Assembly (NCBI GenBank): GCA_013416795.1
Contig: RQSC01000808.1
Coordinates: 1,638-65,637 of the forward strand
Source of the DNA: Prasinococcaceae sp. CCMP 1430
Lineage: Eukaryota; Plantae; Prasinodermophyta
Length of the DNA: 64,000 nucleotides
Direction of reading: 5' to 3'
Below the pieces are notes generated by a model that saw only the letters and a list, made by a program, of their open reading frames with translations, was not told the DNA's origin and did no database searches. The position numbers and the translations under genes were made by a program. Positions 3 to 62,775 of this stretch are shown here, in pieces (position 1 is the stretch's first letter; the number at the start of each line of letters is the position of its first letter).

Positions 3-644
3 CAGCCTGCACCGCCACAGGCACCGCCTGCTCCTCCTGCGCCGTCTTATCCTCTTGCGCCGCCTGCGCCTGCGCCGTCAGGGGCGCAGCAGCGGGCGTC
101 GCCTCCTGCGCCGCAGGAGACGCCTCGGCGGGCGCTGCGGCGGGCGGCGTGTGGCCAGACTCCGGTCGGGCGGCGCTCGGCACTTGGCGCGGTGGTGGCG
201 GCGGTGGCGGCGGTGGCGGCTTTGGCGCCGATTATGGGCGCGGGCGACGCGCGGGCGGGCGTCGACCTCAGCGGCCTCCTGGACACGCAGCGCGCGAAGG
301 AGTACGAGGGCCTCGCTGACACGCTCATCGAGCGCCTGCGTGCGCCCATCGAGGCCGAGGTGGACGGCGCCAAGGAGGGCCAGGTGCGACGCAAGGCGAA
401 CGACGCGGGCGAGTCCATCAAGGAGTTTCTGACGCTGCCAGCTGAGCGCACGCGCGGCCGCGCGTCCGCGGCGGCGCTCACGTCGGCAATCTCGCTGCTC
501 GGCAACTTTTACCGCGCCAACGGGCCCCGCGCCAAGCTCACCGACGACGCGCGCGAGGCCATCCTCGGAGCCATCACCGATGCCGAAATCGCGCTGGAGG
601 ACGAGCGCCAGGCTCGCATAGCGGGGGGCAAGGCGTCGCAGTGA
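3..644 (+). CDS. PSB27: Photosystem II assembly factor Psb27-H2/LPA19-like thylakoid lumen protein; 5' end outside the window
   Basis: Frame is open from base 3 to TGA at 644. Lumen-targeting pattern RRSALG-hydrophobic-ARA, then a Psb27-like helical core (RRKANDAGESIKEFL, AISLLGNFYRANGPRAKL, AILGAITDAEIAL). Confidence 0.7.
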   Translation, partial: QPAPPQAPPAPPAPSYPLAPPAPAPSGAQQRASPPAPQETPRRALRRAACGQTPVGRRSALGAVVAAVAAVAALAPIMGAGDARAGVDLSGLLDTQRAKEYEGLADTLIERLRAPIEAEVDGAKEGQVRRKANDAGESIKEFLTLPAERTRGRASAAALTSAISLLGNFYRANGPRAKLTDDAREAILGAITDAEIALEDERQARIAGGKASQ

Positions 645-2820: not shown

Positions 2821-5352
2821 ATGCGGCTGTGTCCGCGCGAGGCCGACAAGCTCGCGCTCGCTTCGGCGGGCGCGCTGGCGCAGCGCCGCCTCGCGCGCGG
2901 CACGCGCCTGAACGCACCGGAGGCCATCGCGCTCGTCTCGGCGGTCTTGCTCGAGATGGTGCGCGACGGAGGCAAGTCCGTCGCAGAGCTCATGACGCTC
3001 GGCGCAACGCTGCTCGGCTCGCGCCAGGTGATGCCGGGCGTGGCGGACCTCGTACCGGAGGTGCAGGTCGAGGGCACCTTCAAGGACGGCACCAAGCTCG
3101 TGACCGTGCACCGCCCCATCTGTCGTGTGGACGGCGACCTCGCTCTCGCGCTCTATGGCTCGGGGCTTAGCCCGCCGGAGCTGTCTTCATTCGGGCCTGC
3201 GCCAGCTGAGGATGCGGCGCCCGGTGTCGTCACCCCGGGCGGCGATCAGCAGCGCGTTTCTCTCAATGCTGGTCGTGCGGCAGTGCGGCTGACGGTCGTC
3301 AATCGCGCCGACCGCCCGTGCCAGGTGGGCAGTCACTATCACTTCTTCGAAGCCAACAGCTGGCTCGAGTTCGACCGCGCGCAGGCGTATGGTCGCCGCC
3401 TGCACATCGCTGCGGGCACCGCCGTGCGCTTCGAGCCGGGCGAGGAGAAGACCGTGGTGCTCGTGGACGTCGGGGGCAACAGGGTGGGACGTGGCGGCAA
3501 CGGCCTGGCCGACGGCGCGCTGACGCCTGCCAACGCCGCAGCCGCTCTTGAGCGTGCGCTCGCGCGCGGTTTCCGCCACACGCCTGAGCCTAGCGCGCCT
3601 TGCGGTATCGCGGAGCCCGGCTCGGACTTTGACTTCAGCATGAGCCACGACGAGTATGCGGCGATGTACGGGCCGTCGGAGGGCGACCGCGTGCGGCTCG
3701 GCGACACCGCCCTCACGCTTCTGGTGGAGCGCGACCTGCGACGCACGTGCCCCGGCGACGAGTGCACCTTCGGCGGCGGCAAGACGCTGCGCGAGGGAAT
3801 GGGTATTGCCGTTGGGCGAACATCCGCGCAAACGCTGGACACTGTGATCACCAACGTGTTGGTGCTCGATTTCACTGGCGTATTCAAGACGGACGTGGGC
3901 ATAAAGGGTGGGCGCATCGTGGGACTGGGCAAGGCCGGCAACCCCGACGTGATGGACGGTGTGGACCCCGCGCTCGTGTGTGGCGTCAACACGGAGGCCA
4001 TAGCAGGCGAGGGAATGATCCTCACCGCCGGGGCGATGGACGCGCACGTGCACTTCATCTGTCCGCAGATCTGTGACGAGGCCATCGCCAGCGGCATTAC
4101 CAGTCTGCTCGGAGGCGGCACGGGACCCGCCAGCGGGACCTGCGCCACCACATGCACGCCCGGGCCTGAGCACATCCGCATGATGCTACAGGCGACGGAC
4201 GACCTGCCGCTCAACTTCGCCTTCACTGGCAAAGGCAACAGCTCCAAGCCCGAGGGTCTGCACGACATCATCGCTGCCGGTGCTGTGGGCCTCAAGCTGC
4301 ACGAAGACTGGGGCACGACGCCCGCGGCCATCGACTGCTGCCTCTCAGTCGCCGAGGAGCACGACGTGGCGGTGACGATCCACACCGACACGCTCAATGA
4401 GAGTAGCTGCGTGGAGCGCACCATCGAGACCTTCAAGGGGCGCGCCATTCACACGTATCACTCGGAGGGCGCAGGCGGTGGCCACGCGCCGGACATCATC
4501 AAGGTGTGCGGCGAGCCTAATGTGCTGCCGTCGAGCACCAACCCCACGCGGCCATTCACCGTCAACACAGTGGATGAGCACCTTGACATGCTTATGGTGT
4601 GCCACCACCTCTCCAAGCACATTCCGGAGGACGTGGCCTTTGCCGAGAGCCGCATTCGCGGCGAGACCATCGCCGCGGAGGACGTGTTGCACGACACTGG
4701 CGCGATCTCCATCATCGCGTCCGACTCGCAGGCCATGGGCCGCGTGGGCGAAGTGATCACACGGACTTGGCAGACCGCGCACAAGAACAAAGTGCAGCGC
4801 GGCGAACTGTCCGAAGACGCGGGGACAGGCGCAGACAACTTCCGCGCGCGGCGCTACGTGGCAAAGTACACAATCAACCCTTGCATCGCCCACGGCATGT
4901 CGCACGAGCTCGGCTCCGTCGAGGTGGGCAAGCTGGCAGACCTTGTGCTGTGGCGCCCCGCGTTCTTCGGCGCGAAGCCCGAACTGGTGCTCAAGGGCGG
5001 CGACATCGTGTGGGCTCAGATGGGTGACGCCAACGCGTCCATTCCGACGCCCGAGCCGGTACTCATGCGGCCGCAATATGGCGCGCGCGCCAAGGCGGTG
5101 GGCGCCAACTCCGTCGCCTTCGTCAGCAAGCGCGCCGTGAGCGAAAATGTCAAGGAGAAGTACGGCCTCGCCAAGCGCGTGATGGCCGTCGAGGCCTGCC
5201 GGGAGGTGGGCAAGGCTGACATGAAGCTCAACGATGCGCTGCCCAAGATCGAGGTGGACCCCGAGACGTACACCGTGACCGCTGATGGCGAGGTCGTGAC
5301 GTGTGAGCCGCTCGACGAGCTGCCACTCGCGCAAAAGTACTTCCTGTTTTAG
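2821..5352 (+). CDS. URE: Urease, single-chain (gamma-beta-alpha fused) plant-type, intronless, 843 aa
   Basis: Gamma domain ([18 protein letters not shown]), beta domain ([11 protein letters not shown]) and alpha domain with [36 protein letters not shown], flap MLMVCHHL and [11 protein letters not shown]. Confidence 0.99.
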
Positions 5353-10367: not shown

Positions 10368-12032
10368 ATGGCGCGCGCNNNNNNNNNNNNNNNNNNNNNN
10401 NNNNNNNNNNNNNNNNNNNNNNNNNNNNNNNNNNNNNNNNNNNNNNNNNNNNNNNNNNNNNNNNNNNNNNNNNNNNNNNNNNNNNNNNNNNNNNNNNNNN
10501 NNNNNNNNNNNNNNNNNNNNNNNNNNNNNNNNNNNNNNNNNNNNNNNNNNNNNNNNNNNNNNNNNNNNNNNNNNNNNNNNNNNNNNNNNNNNNNNNNNNN
10601 NNNNNNNNNNNNNNNNNNNNNNNNNNNNNNNNNNNNNNNNNNNNNNNNNNNNNNNNNNNNNNNNNNNNNNNNNNNNNNNNNNNNNNNNNNNNNNNNNNNN
10701 NNNNNNNNNNNNNNNNNNNNNNNNNNNNNNNNNNNNNNNNNNNNNNNNNNNNNNNNNNNNNNNNNNNNNNNNNNNNNNNNNNNNNNNNNNNNNNNNNNNN
10801 NNNNNNNNNNNNNNNNNNNNNNNNNNNNNNNNNNNNNNNNNNNNNNNNNNNNNNNNNNNNNNNNNNNNNNNNNNNNNNNNNNNNNNNNNNNNNNNNNNNN
10901 NNNNNNNNNNNNNNNNNNNNNNNNNNNNNNNNNNNNNNNNNNNNNNNNNNNNNNNNNNNNNNNNNNNNNNNNNNNNNNNNNNNNNNNNGCGCGGGCGCGC
11001 CCCGCGCTGCTGCCCTCGCTCCTGGCCTCGCTGCTGGCGCTCCTTTCCGCGGCCCGCCGAGCGCGCGCGCAGGGCTTCGCGCGCACCGACGACGCCGCCG
11101 GCGCGCCGCCCGCTCCGTTCGAGTACCAGCAGGACCCGTTCACGCGCTCGAGCGAGTACCCCTACAACGTGTGCAACCAGCTGCCGGGCAACATCGGCGA
11201 AGATGCGGCCTCGTACGCCGAGACGTACAAGCGCGCCAAGGTGCGCGCGCGCGTGCTTGACCCCCGTCCTCGGTGTCCCGCGCGACGCGGGGGAGGGGGA
11301 AGGGATCGGGGATGGGGGCGCCTTCGAAAGCGGAACGCAGAGAGAGAGAGAGAGGGAGAGAGCGCGCTCGACCCGCGCTCGCGGGGTGCTGACGCCAGCC
11401 GCCGCCGCGCGCTCTCGCCCGCAGTGCGTGCCCATAGAGGCGGGCGAGCTGGAGTTTTGCGACGCGGTCGCGTACGACTCGTGCGTGCGCATCCAGGAGT
11501 ACTGGCGCTTCGACAACCTGGTGGCAATGCAGTACGACGCCGTGCTGCAGGAGTGGAAGGACACGCTGACCGCCAACGACCAGGCGGCGCTCGTCGATCC
11601 GGGCTGCGACGCGGCCTTCAAGGCGTACTTCTGCTACGCGGCATTTCCCAAGTGCTGGGAGGTGCGCTCGCTCGCGCACGCGCCCGGCCTCGCGCGCGCG
11701 CGCGTGCTCGGCGCAGCCAGCGCTGACACGCCCGCCGCCGGCGCGAGCGGCCACAGGGTGATATCGAGGGCGAGTACTGGGAGGTAAGGGCGCCGACGCG
11801 CGCCGCGCGCACCCTCGCGAGCGCTGTGTTCGGCCGTGGCTGACTCCGGGATGCGCGCGCGGGCACGGCGCCGCCATCGCCGCGCGCTCGCCACCCGCGC
11901 AGCTCCCGCTGTGCTTCGACTACTGCGTCGCAGCCAACGCGGCGTGCATTGGCAACCCCGAGGCAGCCAAGCGCGTCTGCCGCTCGCAGGTAGGCACGGG
12001 CCGCGTGAGCCCCGAGGGGCGAACCGACATCA
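10368..12032 (+). CDS. Secreted cysteine-rich Frizzled-CRD-like protein, copy 1. Has the ATG but diverges from copy 2 after 12032. Exons: to 11240, 11425-11661, 11757-11783, from 11903
   Basis: ATG 10368 precedes the gap; signal peptide ARPALLPSLLASLLALLSAARRARA follows it. Three phase-0 GT-AG introns. Cys pattern CDAAFKAYFCYAAFPKC ... LPLCFDYCVAANAAC. Confidence 0.55.
10379..10988. other. Assembly gap (610 N) flanked by (GC)n on both sides
   Basis: Run of N inside a predicted signal-peptide coding region. Confidence 1.
10989..12032 (+). repeat. 1,044-bp direct repeat, copy 1 (partner 17029-18072, offset 6040)
   Basis: No difference found by eye, and the ORF translations match. Identity ends after GAACCGACATCA. 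Confidence 0.95.
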
Positions 12033-20857: not shown

Positions 20858-22882
20858 TTGCTGCCGCGGCGTGCGGCGCCAGGGCGGCGGCGGCGGCGAG
20901 AGAGAGAGTGCGCGGCGGCGGCGGTGGCGGTCGAGGTGGAGGTGGGGGGCGGCGAGGCGGTCGCGGCGCCGGTGGAGAGCGACCGCGAGTCGCTCGACGC
21001 GAATTCTGGCTTCTGCCGCGTCGCGGATCGCTATGACCCTGGCGCGGTTGCGGCCGCAGGTGCGAGCGCCCGCGCACGTGCTCGCTCGCCCGCTCCGCTC
21101 GCCGCCACGACGCCGCCCGCGGCACCGCGCGACGCTGACCCTCGGCGTCGTCCCACAGCGCGCGCCATGCCCCTCGCCGCCGCAAAGCGCGCGGCGGTGC
21201 TAGCATCCGCTGTCGCTCGCCTCGTTCGCCTCTTCAGTGCCTCCGCGGGTGGGCTCGGTGAGCTGCGCTCCGACGCTGTGCGCAGCAAGGCGATCGTCGT
21301 GCGCGAGACGCTCGCGGAGCTCGGCCCGACGGCGGTGAAGCTCGGTCAGAACCTCGGCAACCGACCCGACCTTGTGCGCGAGGACTACATGGAGGAGCTC
21401 AGCACACTGCAGGATCGCGTGCCGCCGTTTCCGAACGAGGAGGCCTTCGCTATCATGCGCTCCCAGCTGGGCATCGCCGACCTGGACGAGGTCTTCTCCG
21501 AGCTGAGCCCGGAGCCGGTCGCGGCCGCCTCCATCGGGCAGGTGTACCGCGGCAGGCTGCGCTCCAACGGCGCAGAGGTAGCCATCAAAGTGCAGCGGCC
21601 AGGCGTCGACCAGGTGTGCACGCTCGACCTGTACTGGCTGAGGGTGCTCGCCGAGAGGGGCCTAAATGCGCTCGCGAAGGAGCGCCTGGGCGTCGAGGCA
21701 ACGCTGCTCGTGGACGAGTTCGCCGAGAAGCTGCTAGAAGAGCTGGACTTCGAGCAGGAGGCGCGCAACCTGGTCGAGTTCCGTGCGAACTTTGCCGCAG
21801 ACGAGCGCGTGACGGTGCCCGAGCCATACATGCCGCTCTGCCGCAAGCGCGTGCTGGTCATGGAGTGGGTCGACGGCCAGCGCTGCACGGCGCCAGGCGC
21901 GCTCGCTGGCAGGGAGGCCACGCGCAAATTCATCAATCTGGGCGTCGAGAGCGGCCTCAAGCAGCTGCTGGAGTTCGGGCTCTTCCACGGCGACCCTCAC
22001 GCAGGGAACGTGCTGGCATCCACCGACGGCGACCTCGCGTACGTCGACCTCGGCAACGTGGCGCAAATCTCGCGCGCCAACCAGGAGAGCCTCATCGATG
22101 CTACCGTGCACGCCATGAACGGCGACTACGAGGGACTCGCGGCGGACCTGGTGGCGCTGGGCTTCGTCGCGCCCGACGTTGACATTGCGCCGATCGCCGA
22201 GTCGCTCGAGAAGGTGTGGGGGGACTCGCTCAGCAAGGCGGGGCTCGCGGACTTCTCCTTTCGCCGCCTCACGTACGCCTTCAACGCGCTGCTCCTCATG
22301 CATCCCATCCGCGTGCCTGAGCGATTTTCGCTGGTCATCCGTGCGCTGCTCACGCAGGAGGGCATCTGCATGCAGCTGGACAGCTCCTTTCGGTTCCTGG
22401 AGGTGGCCTTTCCCTACGTTGCACGTCGACTGCTCACGGACCCCGACCCCGCGCTGCGTCTGCGCATGCTGCAGGTCGTGATTGTCGAGGGCGAGTTCAG
22501 GTGGGACAGGCTGCGCACGCTGCTGTCCATGGCGACCATGAACAACCCGGACGCCATGAGCGGCGGCAAGGGCGGGCTGCTCGCCAGCCTGAACCTGCGC
22601 ATGCTCGCGTGGGAGTCCGCGCGTATGCTCTCGCGGGACGCGGAGCTGCGTACCGCGCTGCTGAGCGGCTTCGAGAAGCGCTCGACGCTTTCGCACGCGC
22701 GTGAGTTCCTAGGAATCGTCGCGCTCGTTCTCGGCGCGCTCGGCGGCGCGTGGGCTGAAAGGGCGGTGCTCACGGCGAGGCGGGGGTGGCGTGCGCTCGC
22801 GTTCACACGCTGGTGGCGGCTGCGGCGACGGCGGCGCGACTCCAAGGACGGCACGCCCCCACCCCAGGTGGCGCTCGTCTGA
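20858..22882 (+). CDS. ABC1K1: Plastoglobule atypical kinase ABC1K1 (PGR6)-like; start unresolved; probable intron 21060-21158
   Basis: LGPTAVKLGQNLGNRPDLVREDYMEEL, AAASIGQVY, VAIKVQRP, LVDEFAEKLLEELD, QLLEFGLFHGDPHAGN, PIRVPERFSLVIRALLTQEGIC, AFPYVARRLLTDPDPALR. No in-frame ATG upstream of 21167; the ORF track starts at a TTG. Confidence 0.88.
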   Translation: MLPRRAAPGRRRRRERECAAAAVAVEVEVGGGEAVAAPVESDRESLDANSGFCRVADRYDPGAVAAAGASARARARSPAPLAATTPPAAPRDADPRRRPTARAMPLAAAKRAAVLASAVARLVRLFSASAGGLGELRSDAVRSKAIVVRETLAELGPTAVKLGQNLGNRPDLVREDYMEELSTLQDRVPPFPNEEAFAIMRSQLGIADLDEVFSELSPEPVAAASIGQVYRGRLRSNGAEVAIKVQRPGVDQVCTLDLYWLRVLAERGLNALAKERLGVEATLLVDEFAEKLLEELDFEQEARNLVEFRANFAADERVTVPEPYMPLCRKRVLVMEWVDGQRCTAPGALAGREATRKFINLGVESGLKQLLEFGLFHGDPHAGNVLASTDGDLAYVDLGNVAQISRANQESLIDATVHAMNGDYEGLAADLVALGFVAPDVDIAPIAESLEKVWGDSLSKAGLADFSFRRLTYAFNALLLMHPIRVPERFSLVIRALLTQEGICMQLDSSFRFLEVAFPYVARRLLTDPDPALRLRMLQVVIVEGEFRWDRLRTLLSMATMNNPDAMSGGKGGLLASLNLRMLAWESARMLSRDAELRTALLSGFEKRSTLSHAREFLGIVALVLGALGGAWAERAVLTARRGWRALAFTRWWRLRRRRRDSKDGTPPPQVALV

Positions 22883-43582: not shown

Positions 43583-43670
43583 NNNNNNNNNNNNNNNNNN
43601 NNNNNNNNNNNNNNNNNNNNNNNNNNNNNNNNNNNNNNNNNNNNNNNNNNNNNNNNNNNNNNNNNNNNNN
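43583..43670. other. Assembly gap (88 N)
   Basis: Run of N. Confidence 1.
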
Positions 43671-44696: not shown

Positions 44697-45501
44697 NNNN
44701 NNNNNNNNNNNNNNNNNNNNNNNNNNNNNNNNNNNNNNNNNNNNNNNNNNNNNNNNNNNNNNNNNNNNNNNNNNNNNNNNNNNNNNNNNNNNNNNNNNNN
44801 NNNNNNNNNNNNNNNNNNNNNNNNNNNNNNNNNNNNNNNNNNNNNNNNNNNNNNNNNNNNNNNNNNNNNNNNNNNNNNNNNNNNNNNNNNNNNNNNNNNN
44901 NNNNNNNNNNNNNNNNNNNNNNNNNNNNNNNNNNNNNNNNNNNNNNNNNNNNNNNNNNNNNNNNNNNNNNNNNNNNNNNNNNNNNNNNNNNNNNNNNNNN
45001 NNNNNNNNNNNNNNNNNNNNNNNNNNNNNNNNNNNNNNNNNNNNNNNNNNNNNNNNNNNNNNNNNNNNNNNNNNNNNNNNNNNNNNNNNNNNNNNNNNNN
45101 NNNNNNNNNNNNNNNNNNNNNNNNNNNNNNNNNNNNNNNNNNNNNNNNNNNNNNNNNNNNNNNNNNNNNNNNNNNNNNNNNNNNNNNNNNNNNNNNNNNN
45201 NNNNNNNNNNNNNNNNNNNNNNNNNNNNNNNNNNNNNNNNNNNNNNNNNNNNNNNNNNNNNNNNNNNNNNNNNNNNNNNNNNNNNNNNNNNNNNNNNNNN
45301 NNNNNNNNNNNNNNNNNNNNNNNNNNNNNNNNNNNNNNNNNNNNNNNNNNNNNNNNNNNNNNNNNNNNNNNNNNNNNNNNNNNNNNNNNNNNNNNNNNNN
45401 NNNNNNNNNNNNNNNNNNNNNNNNNNNNNNNNNNNNNNNNNNNNNNNNNNNNNNNNNNNNNNNNNNNNNNNNNNNNNNNNNNNNNNNNNNNNNNNNNNNN
45501 N
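44697..45501. other. Assembly gap (805 N)
   Basis: Run of N. Confidence 1.
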
Positions 45502-47347: not shown

Positions 47348-47478
47348 GCGCGTGGTAGCCTGTGTACATCTACAAATTCGTTTGGTACGCTTACATGACA
47401 GGGTGTCGTCCACAGACTTGCGCTTGCATCGAGTGCGCCGCTTGGATGACCCCGCGCCCCGCGGCCACGCCCCGATGC

Positions 47479-50097
47479 TCAGTACGGCAACGACGCCAAG
47501 TACATCGGCGATTGGGGGCGCTCGTCGGCGCTCACATCACCTGCAAGGGCATCGCCTGCGAGCGCGGGGTCCATCTCGTAGTCGTCGGGTCCCTGCTGGG
47601 ACAGTTGCCTCGGCGCCGCGGCGAGGTCTTGCGACTCGTCCGGCTGCGGGTGGCTGAGCTGTCTGGTGTGTGTGTGCTCGTCGAACTGGGCCCCGAGGCG
47701 CGCTCGGGCCCGCGCGACGCGATGCTTGACGAGCCACTGCCCCAGCCGGCTTCTCTTCGATGCGCGTTTGCTCCATAGCCGCGGGGTGCCCTGGACGGCC
47801 TTGTTGTTGAGCGCCCCCCACATCTGAAACAGCGTGAAGCGCACGTGCGTCCGCAGGAAGTGCCGCAAGCGCCGGCGAGCATCGCCCCCGCTCGCAGACG
47901 GCCGCACGATCTCGGACGTGATTTCGTCCACGCCAGCTCCGGCTGCGGCGAAGTCGGGATTTGTTTCCGCATCGCTTTGCTCGCACTCATCCCCCTCAGT
48001 TGCATCCCAGTGACGATTGAGGACGGTGGTTGTGGCATCGCCTTCGACCTTGCGCGGAGATGTGCTGAGGTCGGCGGTGGCCTGCTCATTGATATGCTGC
48101 TGAGCCTCGAAGAACATGTGAGGCACATCACCGAAGTCGGCCGAGAGGTCGCTCAAGACAGCGCCCACGATTTCTCCCTGCGACGAAGGCTCAAACAAGC
48201 AGTCAAACATTCCGACATCCTGGGAGCTCAGCACGGGCATGGCGCCAGGGGAGGTCGGGGCACCACACGTGTCCTCCGTGCCGAATCCAGGCAGCGGCTC
48301 GTCAGCGCTGAGCTCGTGTATCTGCGAAAGGCCCTCGAGGGGAGCACCGCTGGCGCCAATGTTGTCCTGCGATGCAGGGAACTCGTACGCCGGGTCCAGA
48401 ACGGGCACCTCTTCGACGCCTACGCTGAGACCGCTTCGGAGCAGATCGATGCGCTTGCAGAGCCGCAGCATGCCCGCCGTTGTCTTCGCCGCGCTTCCCC
48501 TCCCGTCGAAGGGGTCGACGTCGAGTAGGCTCCAGCCCGGATGAAGTGGCTTCAGCCAGGCTTTGTACGCCTCCTCCGTGAGCCTGTTGAACTCGTCGCC
48601 CTCCGCCGTGCCATCGGCAATCTTCCAAATCTCGGTGATGATCGGGGACTTCCAGGGCGACTTGTCCGCCCTCTTTTTGCCCTTGGTCTCCCCGGGCTTG
48701 ACCATCGCGAAGGGGAACTGTCGGTCGTCAAACATGAGCACGGCCAGCGGCATGGCCTTGGTATCATTGGCCGGGTCGACACCCTCCGGCCAGCGGGCGT
48801 AGCATCGCGGTTTGCTCCGCTCCATGACGTACGCGGTGCACTGCGCTAAGATCTTCTCGAAGGAGCACGAGTCGACGCCCGACGCCAAGCACACGCCACT
48901 CGCACCCTCGGGGTGTACCTTGACGGCGCGAAGAAACTCTGCGACGGTCGCAACCTCACCCTCATCCGTGCCTCCGCCCACGTTCGCAGCACTCTCGCCG
49001 CCTTCTGCGGCGGCCAGCGTTTCGCGCACCGCCGTAGTAAGCATGCGCGCGCGCGCTTTCTCCACATTGTTCGCCTGCAGCAGGGAGTCGGTGAGCAACA
49101 ACTTCTTCGGCTTCTGGAATTCTTCCGAGCGTCTCATCTTGACGTCGAAGTCCGTGCTCGAGCGCGCCCCCATGATGCCGTGGTTCGGCTTGCCCCGGCG
49201 AGGCCCGTCGCCGTGCAGCACGCGCACGCCGAGGCGGAACCTGCTCGTTTCTCCCCGCGAGTGCGAAGTGATGTGCATGGTCAACGGAAGCGTGGCGATA
49301 GACTCGCCCTTTTTGAGCACCGTGATGTTGTCCTTGATCACGTCGTTCTTGTACACGTGTGCGTCGAACGTCTCCCCGTCATAGACGTCGCTGACGAAGT
49401 CTGGCTCCAGCACGCACGCCTCGAGCACCAAGTCGTGCGGCGCGGGGCACTGGCGCCCCTGCGAGTCGCATAGGATCACCTGCAGCGGCGAGTTGCACGG
49501 CGCGTGCAGCAGCGCGCCTGTGAAGGGCTCCTCTTTGTCGCCGAACGTGTGCTTCGCGATGAAGTAAGCGCTCCGGAAGTGGCGGCACGCGCGGTCGGTC
49601 ACCTGCGCACAGAAACCGCAGTCCGGGCGCTCGCAGAACGGGTAGCGCTTGATACACGTGTGCGAGAACTGAAGGCGCAGGTCGCCGTACGTGTGCGCTG
49701 CCTCCATGTCCGAGTTCACTGCGAGCTCTCTGTGGTCCAGCTGCGCCGCGGCGCGCGCCCTGAGCGCCTTGTCGACCTTGAGCGACGCCAGGAAGCCGCG
49801 GCAGCGCCAGATCGTATACAGCTCCAGGTACGAGGCCGACATGTTTTGCATCAAATCAGTGACCTCCTTCGACTTCCACGCCTGAGGCGCCCAGCCGTCC
49901 TTCATGGGCTCCGAGCCAGGCACTACCAACGCGGACGGCACGGCGGGGGTAGCCGGCCCACGCTTCTTCGCCCTCCTGCCCGCCGCGGGCGCCGCCGCGG
50001 GCCGCTTCGGCGGGCGCCCGCTCGTTCCTTCGCCGCCGGAGCAGCGCAGGGCGGCTTCCGCAGCGGTCTCCGCGCGCGTGGCAGGGCGGCCTCCCAT
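47479..50097 (-). CDS. CBP60/SARD1-like transcription factor (calmodulin-binding protein 60 family N-terminal domain) with long acidic C-terminal tail
   Basis: Collinear matches to recalled CBP60 blocks: LRLQF, PFTG, LQVILCD, VLEPDF, ETFDAHVYK, VLKKG, SRFRLGVRV, ARSSTDFDVK, RSEEFQK, TVAEFLR. ATG 50097 is the first plausible start. Confidence 0.72.
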   Translation of the reverse strand: MGGRPATRAETAAEAALRCSGGEGTSGRPPKRPAAAPAAGRRAKKRGPATPAVPSALVVPGSEPMKDGWAPQAWKSKEVTDLMQNMSASYLELYTIWRCRGFLASLKVDKALRARAAAQLDHRELAVNSDMEAAHTYGDLRLQFSHTCIKRYPFCERPDCGFCAQVTDRACRHFRSAYFIAKHTFGDKEEPFTGALLHAPCNSPLQVILCDSQGRQCPAPHDLVLEACVLEPDFVSDVYDGETFDAHVYKNDVIKDNITVLKKGESIATLPLTMHITSHSRGETSRFRLGVRVLHGDGPRRGKPNHGIMGARSSTDFDVKMRRSEEFQKPKKLLLTDSLLQANNVEKARARMLTTAVRETLAAAEGGESAANVGGGTDEGEVATVAEFLRAVKVHPEGASGVCLASGVDSCSFEKILAQCTAYVMERSKPRCYARWPEGVDPANDTKAMPLAVLMFDDRQFPFAMVKPGETKGKKRADKSPWKSPIITEIWKIADGTAEGDEFNRLTEEAYKAWLKPLHPGWSLLDVDPFDGRGSAAKTTAGMLRLCKRIDLLRSGLSVGVEEVPVLDPAYEFPASQDNIGASGAPLEGLSQIHELSADEPLPGFGTEDTCGAPTSPGAMPVLSSQDVGMFDCLFEPSSQGEIVGAVLSDLSADFGDVPHMFFEAQQHINEQATADLSTSPRKVEGDATTTVLNRHWDATEGDECEQSDAETNPDFAAAGAGVDEITSEIVRPSASGGDARRRLRHFLRTHVRFTLFQMWGALNNKAVQGTPRLWSKRASKRSRLGQWLVKHRVARARARLGAQFDEHTHTRQLSHPQPDESQDLAAAPRQLSQQGPDDYEMDPALAGDALAGDVSADERPQSPMYLASLPY

Positions 50098-50932
50098 CGT
50101 ACAAGGCCGCTCGCGCGCTTCGAGAGCCCGTGGCGACCCTGCCCGCACGCCCCCCCCCCTGGCCGCCGCCGGCCTGCGCCGCCCTGTAGGCGCGGCCCGA
50201 CGACTGTCGCCGGCGCCTTTCCCAGCGCACACACACGCACACACGCGCGCACACACACGCGCACGAGCGTGCGTTCTGATGGCGCCCCGCCGGCGCCGCG
50301 CCGCGCGTGCGTTCTGATGGGCGCTCAAACGCCTCCGCGCGATCGCGCGCCCCCGCGCCCCGCGCGCCAAAACCCCCGAAAAACACCCGAAAAAGCGCGA
50401 CGGGCCTCGCAATCGGAGGGGCGCCTCCCCGCACGGGAGACACGTGAAACGACCCGAGAAATGCGCGACGCCACCAACCGACGGCCGGCCGGCTTGTCCG
50501 TCCGGAGTTAGGGGTTTTATTGAGGTGTAGACAATAGGGTTCGATACCCCTTCAAACACCTCATCAATTCTCATCATGGCGTGTCCGTTCGCGAGCGACA
50601 ACGCAGCGTTACGAGGGACGTCAACATTACCCACGGGCGCTACCATCGGCGTCGGCCGTGATGTGATGGTGATCGAAAGCCTGCCGCCGGCGGTAGGGTT
50701 TGGCAGGCAGCCGGCCTGCACCTGAAGCCCTCGCCTGCGTGCGCGCGCGCGCGGCGCGGCGCGCGTGGATTCCGCCTCATTTTAGTGTACTATGAATATG
50801 AGGTTCCTAAATTCTTGAGAATTTTGAAGTATCCAGAAGGAATCCATTGCCGTTGCGGGACGGGCGAAAAGCGCGCGGGCGCGGGCGGGCTGGCGCGGGC
50901 GCCACAGGGCTCGGGTGCGCGGCGGGGCGGCC

Positions 50933-50978
50933 NNNNNNNNNNNNNNNNNNNNNNNNNNNNNNNNNNNNNNNNNNNNNN
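50933..50978. other. Assembly gap (46 N)
   Basis: Run of N. Confidence 1.
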
Positions 50979-58883: not shown

Positions 58884-61529
58884 TCACTTGATGAGCTTGG
58901 CGAGCCACGGCAGCTCCTTGTCGGCTCGCGCCGCGAGCCCCAGGTCGGCGATGGACACGTTGAGCCCCACCTTGGCCCGCGCATGCCGCCTGTCGCCGTT
59001 CTCCAGCAGCAGCAGCCGTGAGGCGCCCATGCGCTGGACGGCGGCGTGCAGCGCGCCCGAACCGGCCGGAGGCAGCGGCAGCGCGTGCGCCTTGCACAGC
59101 TCGGCATGCGAGCGCAGCACGGTGCCGACCTCCGTCTCTTGCACGCCCGCTCGTTGCGTCTCTCTCGCGACAGCCGCCATGAGCACTCGCTCGTGCAGGG
59201 AGAGCGACATCACGGACTTCACGGCCGCGCCCTCGAACATCTCCTTCACGGCGGCATTCACGTCCTTGATGGTGGCCATCTCGCCGCCGCGCTCCTCGGT
59301 GCACTCGGCCGCGCGACGGCACATCTCCAGCGCGCGTCGCACGTCGCCGCTCACGGCTGCCACCTTGCGGCTAGCGAAGTCCACCGCCTCGGGCGCGAAC
59401 GCGCCCTCGCACGCGCCGAGGCGCGCGCGCACGATCTGCTCGATCTGCTCGCGCACGTAGGGCTGGAAGGGCGTGCGGCGCAGCCCCGCGCGGCTGAGGA
59501 TGCGCGGGAGCAGGCGCTCGGGAAGGTCCATGGTGTTCGCGATGCCGATCACCGCGAGGCGAGGCACGCCCTTGCGCGGCGCCGCCAGGGACCACTCGAA
59601 GAGGTTGTACAGCACCTCCTGGCGGCGCGTCACCAGCGAGTCGAGCTCGTCGACGACGAGGAGCGTCGCGGGCGCGGCCGTCGCGTCGGCTCCCCGGCCC
59701 GTGCCGCCGGCCTTGCCGCGCTTGGCCGAGCCCGCCGCCCAAGCGCCGCCCGCCGCCGGCGTGAAGCGCTCCTGCAGCAGGTCGAGCGCCTGCGAGGGCC
59801 CCACGTAGTGGCCGTGCAGTGCCTCGTAGATCGAGCTGTACGCGTGTTGGGGCGATGGCAGCCGCAGGCCGTTGATCATCACCAGCTGGAAGGGCGCCTG
59901 GTTGGCCTCCTTTGCCTCCTTCCTGGCGGCGCGCATGACCTCCATGACCGTGGCGGTCTTGCCGGTGCCGGGCACGCCCGAAATGTACAGGCAGCGCCCC
60001 GCACCCGCGCCCGCGCCCGCTCCCACTATGCCCTTGACGAACGAATGCACCGCCTCGCGCTCCTTCTCGCGACACGGCAGGCTCGCGGGCAGGGCGGCGA
60101 GCTGCAGCATCTCCCTCGCGCGCTGCAGGGGCGTGCGCTTGCGGTCCCGCACCCACTGCGGGATGGCCTGCGCGCCCATGCCGTACACGCACGACGCGGC
60201 ACCCGCCGCCTCGGCGTCCTCGAAGCCCATCGCGCGTCGCGCGGAGGCGCCCGCGCGACCGTTGGCGGCGCGCGCGCTCGCCTTGCTGCGCGAGCCGCCC
60301 GCGCCACCCTTGGCGCTCGCGCCCTTCCCACTGCCCTTGCGGCCGACGCGCTTGCCCGTGCCGCCAGCCAGGGCGCGCTCGCGGCGCCTCTCCATGCGCG
60401 GATCGAACGCGCGCGCGTCCTCATCGCCCTCGTCGTCGTCGTCGCTCCCCGCCCAGTCGTCGTCGGAGGCGTCCTCGGCGTCGCTCCACTCCTCGCGCTC
60501 GCCCTCCGCCCTGCGTCTGAAGCGCTGCCAGCCGGCGTCATAGTCGTACTCGCACATGTACACATCGTCCTTGTTGACGCGCGCGTACATCTCGAGCTCC
60601 GCGGTGGCGTCCCCGATCGCGTGGTTGTTGGCCATCGCCTGGAAGGCGGCCCGCCCGAGCACGCACGCGACGCCCGTCGCGCTGGCGACCTCCTGTGCGT
60701 CGACGTGGTTGGAAAGGAAGACCTCGCGCCGGCCGTGGTGCGGCTGGCGGCCGGGGCCCGTGTGCTCGGGCTTGTAGAACCAGCGCCCGCTGAACATCTC
60801 GGTACCATCGGCCTCGCGCCAGATGGCCTCGATGCGCGCAAGCTCGTACTGGTGCGCGAGGAACTTCTCGCGCGGCGTGCGCGCGCAGCCGCGTCCGCCG
60901 CCGGCGGCCTTTGCGTCGGCGCAGGCGGAGGCGCCCGCACGGGCGGCGGCCTCGCCGTCCCCGACTTTGACGCTCCCCACGCACTTGGGGCAGAACCAGT
61001 CGCCCTCGGGCACGCGCGTGAGCTTCGGGCGCAGGCAGTCCAGGTGGTAGCCACCCAGGCAGCCGTCGCACTCGAGCATGACGTCCTTGCCGGGCGCGTC
61101 GCATGCGAGGCCGCACACCTCGCAGAGGTCCTCCGCCTCGTCCTCGGCGACGTCGCCGTCCATGCTCACGTACACAACGTCGCCGATGCGCACTTTGGTC
61201 TCCCAGCCGTCGCTCAGCGCCACCTGGCGGAGCGCGACACGCTTGGGGCCGCGAGGCGCCGGCGCCTTTCCCCTTGCCTTGCCCTTGCCGTTGGCGATCG
61301 CCTTGCGAGCCTGCTTGGCCTTGGGTGTGGGAGGGGCCTTGGGCGAGGGAGAGGCGCTCGGCTCGTCATCATCCTCGTCCGAACTTCCTGCATCCCCAGC
61401 GTCGAGCTCCTCAACGGCATCCTCGAACTGGTCGTCGCTCTCGGAGTCGCCGCGCGCGGTGGCGGCGGCGGCGGCCTTGGCGGCGCGCGCCCTACCCCGT
61501 GCGGCGGCCGNCACGTCCGCAGCCGCCAC
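58884..61529 (-). CDS. ORC1: Origin recognition complex subunit 1, plant type (PHD finger within BAH domain, AAA+, winged helix); exact start unresolved (GTG at 61529, N at 61511)
   Basis: PHD CEVC...LECDGCLGGYHLDCLRPKL..VPEGDWFCPKC; BAH ARIEAIW..GRWFYKPEHT..REVFLS; LPCREKE, YISGVPGTGKT, INGLRL, VVDELD, IGIANTMDLPE, FQPY, SGDVRRALEMCRRA. Confidence 0.96.
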   Translation of the reverse strand: MAAADVXAAARGRARAAKAAAAATARGDSESDDQFEDAVEELDAGDAGSSDEDDDEPSASPSPKAPPTPKAKQARKAIANGKGKARGKAPAPRGPKRVALRQVALSDGWETKVRIGDVVYVSMDGDVAEDEAEDLCEVCGLACDAPGKDVMLECDGCLGGYHLDCLRPKLTRVPEGDWFCPKCVGSVKVGDGEAAARAGASACADAKAAGGGRGCARTPREKFLAHQYELARIEAIWREADGTEMFSGRWFYKPEHTGPGRQPHHGRREVFLSNHVDAQEVASATGVACVLGRAAFQAMANNHAIGDATAELEMYARVNKDDVYMCEYDYDAGWQRFRRRAEGEREEWSDAEDASDDDWAGSDDDDEGDEDARAFDPRMERRRERALAGGTGKRVGRKGSGKGASAKGGAGGSRSKASARAANGRAGASARRAMGFEDAEAAGAASCVYGMGAQAIPQWVRDRKRTPLQRAREMLQLAALPASLPCREKEREAVHSFVKGIVGAGAGAGAGRCLYISGVPGTGKTATVMEVMRAARKEAKEANQAPFQLVMINGLRLPSPQHAYSSIYEALHGHYVGPSQALDLLQERFTPAAGGAWAAGSAKRGKAGGTGRGADATAAPATLLVVDELDSLVTRRQEVLYNLFEWSLAAPRKGVPRLAVIGIANTMDLPERLLPRILSRAGLRRTPFQPYVREQIEQIVRARLGACEGAFAPEAVDFASRKVAAVSGDVRRALEMCRRAAECTEERGGEMATIKDVNAAVKEMFEGAAVKSVMSLSLHERVLMAAVARETQRAGVQETEVGTVLRSHAELCKAHALPLPPAGSGALHAAVQRMGASRLLLLENGDRRHARAKVGLNVSIADLGLAARADKELPWLAKLIK

Positions 61530-62361: not shown

Positions 62362-62775
62362 NNNNNNNNNNNNNNNNNNNNNNNNNNNNNNNNNNNNNNN
62401 NNNNNNNNNNNNNNNNNNNNNNNNNNNNNNNNNNNNNNNNNNNNNNNNNNNNNNNNNNNNNNNNNNNNNNNNNNNNNNNNNNNNNNNNNNNNNNNNNNNN
62501 NNNNNNNNNNNNNNNNNNNNNNNNNNNNNNNNNNNNNNNNNNNNNNNNNNNNNNNNNNNNNNNNNNNNNNNNNNNNNNNNNNNNNNNNNNNNNNNNNNNN
62601 NNNNNNNNNNNNNNNNNNNNNNNNNNNNNNNNNNNNNNNNNNNNNNNNNNNNNNNNNNNNNNNNNNNNNNNNNNNNNNNNNNNNNNNNNNNNNNNNNNNN
62701 NNNNNNNNNNNNNNNNNNNNNNNNNNNNNNNNNNNNNNNNNNNNNNNNNNNNNNNNNNNNNNNNNNNNNNNNNNN
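62362..62775. other. Assembly gap (414 N)
   Basis: Run of N. Confidence 1.

Follow-up and report, generated by a model that had tools for sequence, protein, structure and literature searches.

A probable, highly divergent member of the CBP60/SARD1 family encoded by the marine green alga Prasinoderma coloniale

The CBP60-like gene and its transcripts

The stretch of DNA analysed here (the window) comprises 64,000 nucleotides of contig RQSC01000808.1 (positions 1,638 to 65,637 of the forward strand, assembly GCA_013416795.1), deposited under the name Prasinococcaceae sp. CCMP 1430 and assigned below to Prasinoderma coloniale. A single long open reading frame (ORF) on its minus strand, at positions 47479-50721, holds a protein of 872 amino acids that resembles the CBP60 proteins of land plants, which are promoter-binding factors recognizing GAAATTT-type sites and which include CBP60g and SARD1, the master regulators of plant salicylate immunity. 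A preliminary description of the window had listed ten sequence blocks typical of the CBP60 DNA-binding region, and all ten are present, in order and in one frame of this protein (Table 1). It had placed the domain at positions 48799-49686, a span that covers residues 138-433 and hence most of the domain, but the conserved region extends further, to residue 525.

The start codon was chosen as the first ATG within the transcribed part of the ORF; further in-frame ATGs upstream fall outside the stretch covered by RNA. In run X16, a contig of 2,567 nucleotides is collinear with positions 47393-49959 and a second contig lies on positions 49985-50144, and run X17 provides three more pieces; none of these sequences contains a joint. 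Both runs carry the kind label ‘RNA?’, which is a guess. Pieces of the gene also occur in two seawater metatranscriptomes (X18 and X19) from two studies, which are recorded RNA libraries, with a likeness of 95-100%. The collinearity of the RNA-type contigs and the lack of joints indicate that the gene is unspliced and that the message covers the whole coding sequence.

A wild variant of the gene, found on a Tara Oceans metagenome contig (L007), differs at 14 codons, of which 9 carry synonymous and 5 nonsynonymous changes. The resulting ratio of nonsynonymous to synonymous change (pN/pS) is roughly 0.18; with counts this small the ratio gives a direction, and it points toward constraint on the protein. 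We conclude that the CBP60-like gene is intact and expressed and that it is a nuclear gene with a single exon. Positions 50223-50274, in the promoter or 5′ leader region, hold an imperfect GT/GC-rich simple repeat, and a 46-base run of N lies about 840 bases upstream of the start codon.

Relatives and common ancestry

An exhaustive phmmer search, with residues 100-560 as the query against 1.84 billion cluster representatives, returned three relatives in all: P0002 (E = 9.6e-41, 34% identity), P0003 (E = 1.7e-6) and P0004 (E = 8e-4), where E values refer to the whole library. P0002 is encoded on Tara marine metagenome contigs (L001-L004) with a guanine-plus-cytosine (GC) content of 68%, and it aligns with the window protein over nearly its whole length; when the window and the P0002 contig are compared for synteny, the CBP60-like gene alone matches. 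P0003 clusters with proteins of Prasinococcus capsulatus (EukProt EP00958; P0003/P0008), an alga that we take to belong to the same order as Prasinoderma, and its source is another representative of this deep lineage. P0004 is known from one Tara Oceans run (ERR1740126), on a 53%-GC contig that carries a single gene and ends without a lineage marker.

The sole Pfam match of the Prasinoderma protein is to PF07887 (Calmodulin_bind), the N-domain of CBP60 proteins, with 18.5 bits (E = 2e-3) for the full ORF and 20.3 bits (E = 6e-4) for the domain alone. This match aligns profile positions 13-127 of 147 with residues 191-295. The gathering cut-offs are 25.5 bits for PF07887 and 24.5 bits for PF20451 (Calmod_bind_M). 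The two more distant relatives pass the first of these, P0003 with 43.3 bits and P0004 with 57.2 bits, and P0004 also passes the second with 27.7 bits, under which P0003 stays at 22.4 bits. The Prasinoderma protein aligns to the stretch of P0004 that matches PF20451, including its invariant TVxDF. PF20452 (Calmod_bind_C) has no match at E up to 1 in any of the four algal proteins. Thus the Pfam check that the preliminary description had proposed is sub-threshold for the protein itself and positive for its relatives, in P0004 for two models.

Profile comparison joins these proteins more firmly. A profile of the query and P0002, aligned with hhalign to a profile of P0004 and P0003, gives a probability of 99.6% (E = 2.6e-24) over 290 columns that span all three subdomains described below. 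Four-way alignments of the algal proteins contain 35 invariant columns in the conserved domain. The plant family itself emerges from the language-model features of the ESM Atlas, where the best 15 neighbours are CBP60 clusters carrying PF07887, PF20451 and PF20452 (score 0.93, 208 of 256 features) and the best named matches fall in the CBP60 family set in 10 of 10 cases. An Atlas shape search with the AlphaFold model likewise ranks two plant CBP60 clusters at the top, one with a template-modelling score (TM-score) of 0.42 over model residues 1-390 (numbered from protein residue 135) and the other with 0.32 over 146 residues at a root-mean-square deviation (rmsd) of 3.7.

At the level of sequence comparison, these results show that the conserved domain of the window protein shares common ancestry with proteins that satisfy the Pfam CBP60 models. 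We consider it likely that the Prasinoderma protein belongs, as a highly divergent member, to the CBP60/SARD1 lineage of regulators that bind DNA. The CBP60 domain claimed in the preliminary description is borne out by the Pfam-positive relatives, the profile–profile alignment and the Atlas feature and shape rankings; the outcome named there as refuting the claim, the lack of a significant HMM or structural match, did not arise.

No plant CBP60 is significant in the single-sequence search, and the algal lineage must therefore be extremely diverged. A word-index search with the domain region of the full protein found its own cluster only, and searches of PDB sequences with the ORF, the alignment profile and P0004 returned no CBP60 or SARD1 chain, only chance-level matches and the helix-hairpin-helix of Pol IV. 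None of the pattern matches to the alignment profile in Joint Genome Institute (JGI) metagenome and viral contigs was confirmed, and an Atlas search among unnamed clusters gave no usable match. Separately, the N-terminal domain of Atlas cluster DG1062 (PF28397, with haptophyte members) matches the β-sandwich of the Prasinoderma protein with a TM-score of 0.52 by its own length, a hint of possible relatives of the CBP60-type sandwich beyond the green plants.

Domain architecture and a proposed mode of action

The features of the gene and protein are collected in Table 1. Structural models were built from the four-sequence alignments and have a mean predicted local distance difference test (pLDDT) score of 65.8 for the first (core 80-90) and 69.7 for the second.

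Table 1 Features of the CBP60-like gene and its predicted protein (all on the minus strand of the window).
Feature	Residues	Positions	Strand	Content or basis
Coding sequence	1-872	47479..50097	(-)	872 codons plus stop, single exon; ATG at 50095-50097
Minimum transcribed span		47393..50144	(-)	RNA-type contigs; untranslated regions of about 86 nt (3′) and at least 47 nt (5′)
N-terminal basic patch, candidate nuclear localization signal	28-47	49957..50016	(-)	RPPKRP...GRRAKKRG; sequence reading and motif scan, putative function
Whole CBP60-conserved domain, LRLQF to W..HPGW	139-525	48523..49683	(-)	Alignments, hhalign, Atlas features
N-terminal β-sandwich	135-322	49132..49695	(-)	PF07887 match, models; holds FRLGxR
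LRLQF	140-144	49666-49680	(-)	Block 1
Cys/His-rich insert, candidate zinc knuckle	146-173	49579..49662	(-)	CX4CX2CX7-11C: C155, C160, C163, C171
PFTG	191-194			Block 2
LQVILCD	205-211			Block 3
VLEPDF	229-234			Block 4
TFDAHVYK	243-250			Block 5
LKKG	261-264			Block 6
RFRLGVRV	286-293			Block 7
FDVK	317-320			Block 8
RSEEFQK	323-329			Block 9
Central helical domain with invariant TVxDF	331-426	48820..49107	(-)	Probably helix-hairpin-helix; PF20451 in P0004, structural matches
TVAEFLR	384-390	48928-48948	(-)	Block 10
C-terminal α/β subdomain, invariant PR, FD, W....HP.W	427-525	48523..48819	(-)	Alignments, hhalign columns
Acidic, poorly conserved tail, probably disordered, candidate activation region	530-736	47890..48510	(-)	Composition; putative function
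Basic amphipathic helix, candidate calmodulin-binding site	739-763	47809..47883	(-)	F747, F754, W760, 1-8-14 spacing
C-terminal short motif SQQxPxDYEMxPxL	833-846	47560..47601	(-)	Conserved in the window protein and P0002

The β-sandwich carries FRLGxR, the most conserved motif of the family. Compared with known structures by VIA-align, its model matches NF-kB p52 (Z 8.7), TonEBP (8.1), p65 (8.0), the velvet protein VosA (8.0), STAT (7.2), Runt (6.5) and CEP-1/p53 (6.2), and DNA-binding sandwiches of the Rel-homology, velvet, STAT, Runt and p53 types occupy most of the top 14 ranks. A Foldseek search of the model against the PDB found nothing at E 1e-3.

For the central helical domain, the best VIA-align matches have modest Z values and are the Rev1 thumb (6.1), AF1548 (5.9), the N-domains of the RAD51 family (5.3-5.7) and the C-terminal domain of the RNA polymerase α-subunit (5.0-5.6). 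Helix-hairpin-helix matches arise from both models and also include Y-family polymerase thumbs, UvrC and FANCM-FAAP24. In P0004, there are sub-threshold Pfam matches to IMS_HHH, a phmmer match to the Pol IV thumb and a PGIG sequence; a clear GIG hairpin was not seen in the sequence of the Prasinoderma central domain. Taken together, residues 388-417 of P0004 and residues 331-426 of the window protein show a resemblance between Calmod_bind_M and the helix-hairpin-helix module that binds the DNA backbone, and on the models Calmod_bind_M of plant CBP60 proteins may be such a module too. The probable fold is a Rel/velvet-like β-sandwich followed by a helix-hairpin-helix module. The third subdomain has polo-box-like proteins as its best structural matches, with Z of about 4.

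The sandwich is interrupted near its start by a Cys/His-rich insert. C155, C160 and C163 fall in invariant columns, the fourth cysteine follows 7-11 residues on in all four sequences and an extra H-x-C precedes the pattern in three of the four algal proteins. The insert is best read as a zinc site, because the pattern is invariant across proteins that share only 20-34% identity. The PF07887 match begins only beyond this insert, where pLDDT is below 50 and the model is unreliable.

Beyond the conserved domain, the acidic tail contains 36 aspartate and glutamate residues against 10 lysine and arginine residues and is weakly conserved with P0002. The amphipathic helix that follows is kept residue for residue in this orthologue in an otherwise divergent tail; no other part of the protein reaches its helical hydrophobic moment (0.64), and it has a net charge of +5. 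From these sequence properties, it is a reasonable candidate for a calmodulin site.

Homology and expression are shown by the data above; beyond them, we infer the following mode of action. The Prasinoderma protein would enter the nucleus by means of its N-terminal basic patch. DNA bases would be read by the Rel/velvet-like sandwich with its four-cysteine, probably zinc-bearing, insert, and the helix-hairpin-helix module would grip the DNA backbone. Nuclear, sequence-specific DNA binding is hinted at indirectly by the transcription-factor-type sandwich matches, by the helix-hairpin-helix-like middle domain and by the basic patch. The long acidic tail would then regulate (activate) transcription, and the basic helix on its C-terminal side may receive Ca2+/calmodulin. 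Nothing in this analysis ties the algal protein to salicylate immunity.

Host, family age and comparison with known systems

The lineage of the host was read from a marker gene in the window, as the preliminary description had advised. An ABC1 kinase ORF at positions 20858-22882 of the plus strand clusters with EP00793_Prasinoderma_coloniale_P005660 of EukProt (gene PRCOL_00004134), with which it is identical at 625 of 625 aligned residues; the one gap, of 33 residues, is an annotated intron. The PRCOL_00004134 model excises this 99-base in-frame intron, and the genomic ORF reads through it. Among the next named relatives of the kinase, which include chlorophyte as well as streptophyte proteins, identity is 45-59%. 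Micromonas was considered as the host and is ruled out: the named ABC1 relatives are just 45-59% identical, and the cluster at 100% contains the Prasinoderma coloniale protein.

With runs of N set aside, the GC content of the window is about 64-72%, which together with the marine habitat agrees with the published P. coloniale genome (69.8% GC, marine origin; PMC7455551). By its marker gene, the host is Prasinoderma coloniale of the phylum Prasinodermophyta and no streptophyte. Prasinodermophyta is a third green-plant phylum and diverged before the split between Chlorophyta and Streptophyta (PMC7455551). The placement of the host outside Streptophyta in the preliminary description therefore holds, but the lineage is deeper than the ‘prasinophyte-grade’ proposed there. 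A second ABC1 kinase (P0026), 79% identical to that of the window, is, like P0002, found solely in marine metagenome samples. The P0002 contigs, with a GC content equal to that of P. coloniale, and P0026 suggest that the open ocean harbours a close relative of Prasinoderma that has yet to be sequenced.

The neighbours of the CBP60-like gene are ordinary eukaryotic nuclear genes, which encode the ABC1 kinase, a MINDY deubiquitinase, RRP36, an SNF2 helicase, a short-chain dehydrogenase and ORC1 with PHD and BAH domains. The ORC1-type protein (58884-61529, minus strand) combines a PHD finger with BAH, AAA+ and Cdc6 winged-helix domains, an arrangement that we take to be the plant-type ORC1 architecture, here in a deep green lineage. 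The Rfam model 5_ureB_sRNA, a Helicobacter antisense RNA, scores 56 bits at positions 3790-4078 of the minus strand within a urease ORF; this match most likely reflects conserved urease coding sequence and not an algal small RNA. Runs of N (46-805 bases) lie at 10379-10988, 44697-45501 and 62362-62775, with shorter ones at 2612-2647, 43583-43670 and 50933-50978, and they account for strings of X in several ORFs of the window. Islands of low GC content were considered as foreign DNA, an idea that was rejected since the dips are explained by these runs (gaps or masked bases).

Several observations weigh against CBP60 membership or against the structural reading built on it. The direct PF07887 score of the Prasinoderma protein is below the gathering cut-off, which leaves the protein outside the family as Pfam defines it, and the Pfam scan gives no direct match to PF20451 or PF20452. 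The exhaustive single-sequence search recovered no plant CBP60 at E 1e-3, and a word search with the four-sequence profile recovered none at E 1, so that the algal protein is linked to those of plants only transitively. CBP60 clusters stay under a TM-score of 0.5, the structural models are of moderate confidence and the Z values, for the sandwich as for the central domain, lie in a range that the tool calls common (‘typical best Z of 7 to 8’ without a clear match). In addition, 15% of shuffled versions of the protein contain a 1-8-14 motif of such a charge, comparable to that of the candidate calmodulin helix, and the motif alone is weak evidence. The low Pfam score, the low TM-scores and the failure of phmmer and word searches to find plant proteins are what a separate family might show if it had a common β-sandwich and resembled CBP60 only at the level of fold, or by chance, with no shared ancestry. 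We regard such an origin as very improbable. The similarity is collinear over three subdomains and so goes beyond the sandwich, significant matches link P0003 and P0004 to the query on one side and to two separate Pfam CBP60 models on the other, and the length and significance of the hhalign alignment and the uniform CBP60 identity of the best named Atlas matches also speak for descent.

A CBP60 descendant might instead have taken on another DNA job, as a chromatin or DNA-repair factor with neither sequence preference nor calmodulin control. The repair and replication modules among the best matches of the central domain (Rev1, Y-family polymerases, RAD51 paralogues, UvrC and FANCM-FAAP24) favour this idea, as do the statistical weakness of the calmodulin motif, the missing PF20452 match and the four-cysteine insert and 872-residue length that set the protein apart from plant CBP60s. 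It seems unlikely to us, however, given that every leading match of the sandwich is a transcription factor of the sequence-specific kind (NF-kB, TonEBP, velvet, STAT, Runt and p53), that the plant relatives are promoter-binding factors and that an acidic tail and a basic N-terminal patch suit a transcription factor. The gene could also be foreign to the alga, as a contaminant or as DNA acquired horizontally from a streptophyte or some other eukaryotic donor, in which case it would be silent on the age of the family. A patchy distribution, with no CBP60 reported in Chlamydomonas or Volvox (PMC11049924), and the 53%-GC source of P0004 fit such an account, but the gene sits among ordinary P. coloniale nuclear genes at the GC content of the host. 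Moreover, 0.98 of the sampled words of the stretch recur in 15 runs from more than 10 studies (13 of the 15 runs are flagged as possible sources), a wild Tara variant exists, the closest relatives belong to a 68%-GC marine metagenome organism and to Prasinococcus, and the divergence from plant CBP60 proteins is too deep for a recent transfer. We regard a foreign origin as very improbable, though an ancient horizontal transfer may fit these data, and retain vertical descent of a divergent CBP60 gene.

Published work places the family elsewhere. In papers on the family, CBP60 proteins are described as plant-specific, and the main evolutionary study covered 247 land-plant species only (bioRxiv 10.1101/2020.07.16.207134). 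A cotton study found no CBP60 in Chlamydomonas or Volvox, the only algae checked, and concluded that algae have none (PMC11049924); a study of brown algae found none (PMC12089773), and the family goes unmentioned in the P. coloniale genome paper (PMC7455551). In the literature searched there is no report of a CBP60 outside streptophytes, although public domain databases may list some. The algal gene described here is a new, structurally distinct CBP60 variant well outside the accepted range of the family.

Prasinodermophyta diverged before the chlorophyte-streptophyte split, and under vertical descent the CBP60 family is therefore older than that split, as the preliminary description had conjectured. 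This inference is strengthened because the Prasinococcus protein is Pfam-positive. Judged from these sequences, the CBP60 DNA-binding core probably dates to the ancestor shared by all green plants. With members in Prasinoderma and Prasinococcus, the conserved domain would have arisen no later than the first green-plant split, and so early an origin implies that CBP60 was lost in some chlorophytes. A fuller scenario, which we put forward tentatively and with more doubt than trust, is that the ancestral core was a zinc-bearing Rel/velvet-like sandwich with a helix-hairpin-helix under the control of Ca2+/calmodulin, kept in Prasinodermophyta, lost in the chlorophytes examined and later recruited to land-plant immunity. 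As an outgroup, the algal member can help to tell ancestral features from later ones, be it the DNA motif, calmodulin control or partner domains. Should plant members prove to have the fold proposed here, the central regulators of salicylate immunity would have a DNA-binding fold in common with NF-kB and the velvet proteins of fungi, a statement not found in the papers searched.

Land-plant CBP60 proteins (CBP60a-g and SARD1 of Arabidopsis, with PF07887, PF20451 and PF20452) are the first family retrieved with the algal protein by Pfam, language-model features and shape search. They have the same order of blocks, from LxLxF through the FRLGxR sandwich, xFxVKxxR and the TVxDF helix pair to an aromatic C-terminal end. 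Ca2+-dependent calmodulin binding occurs in CBP60a-g and not in SARD1, so it is not universal in the family; the site of CBP60a-f lies at the C-terminus, and the candidate helix of the algal protein has a similar position. The algal proteins depart from the PF07887 model of the plant family in that about 40 inserted residues with the Cys/His pattern separate the first strand from the remainder of the domain. They are also roughly twice as long, at 872-1172 residues compared with 254-679 for representatives of plant CBP60 clusters in the Atlas, and have long tails, which are acidic in Prasinoderma and P0002. They share a conserved end, W....HP.W, and, in contrast to the plant family, lack a PF20452 match. 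The host differs as well, being a marine picoalga that does not belong to Streptophyta, the group to which the family is generally assigned.

A further comparison is with P0003/P0008 and P0004, which resemble the Prasinoderma protein in the cysteine insert, FRLG, TVxDF, W..GHPxW and overall length, at an identity of 20-30%. P0003 and P0004 pass Pfam CBP60 cut-offs, whereas the Prasinoderma protein does not, and their C-terminal tails are unrelated to its tail and contain neither the basic helix nor the DYEM motif. Rel-homology, velvet and p53-like factors are alike in the predicted fold of the sandwich, with 100-127 residues aligned at an rmsd of 3.2-4.1, but this likeness comes from a model of moderate confidence with borderline Z values and is not accompanied by sequence similarity (6-12% identity). 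In the Prasinoderma protein, a predicted helix-hairpin-helix follows the sandwich, at the place where Rel factors have a Rel-type dimerization domain. We claim no membership of those families; the likeness indicates what the Prasinoderma protein may work like.

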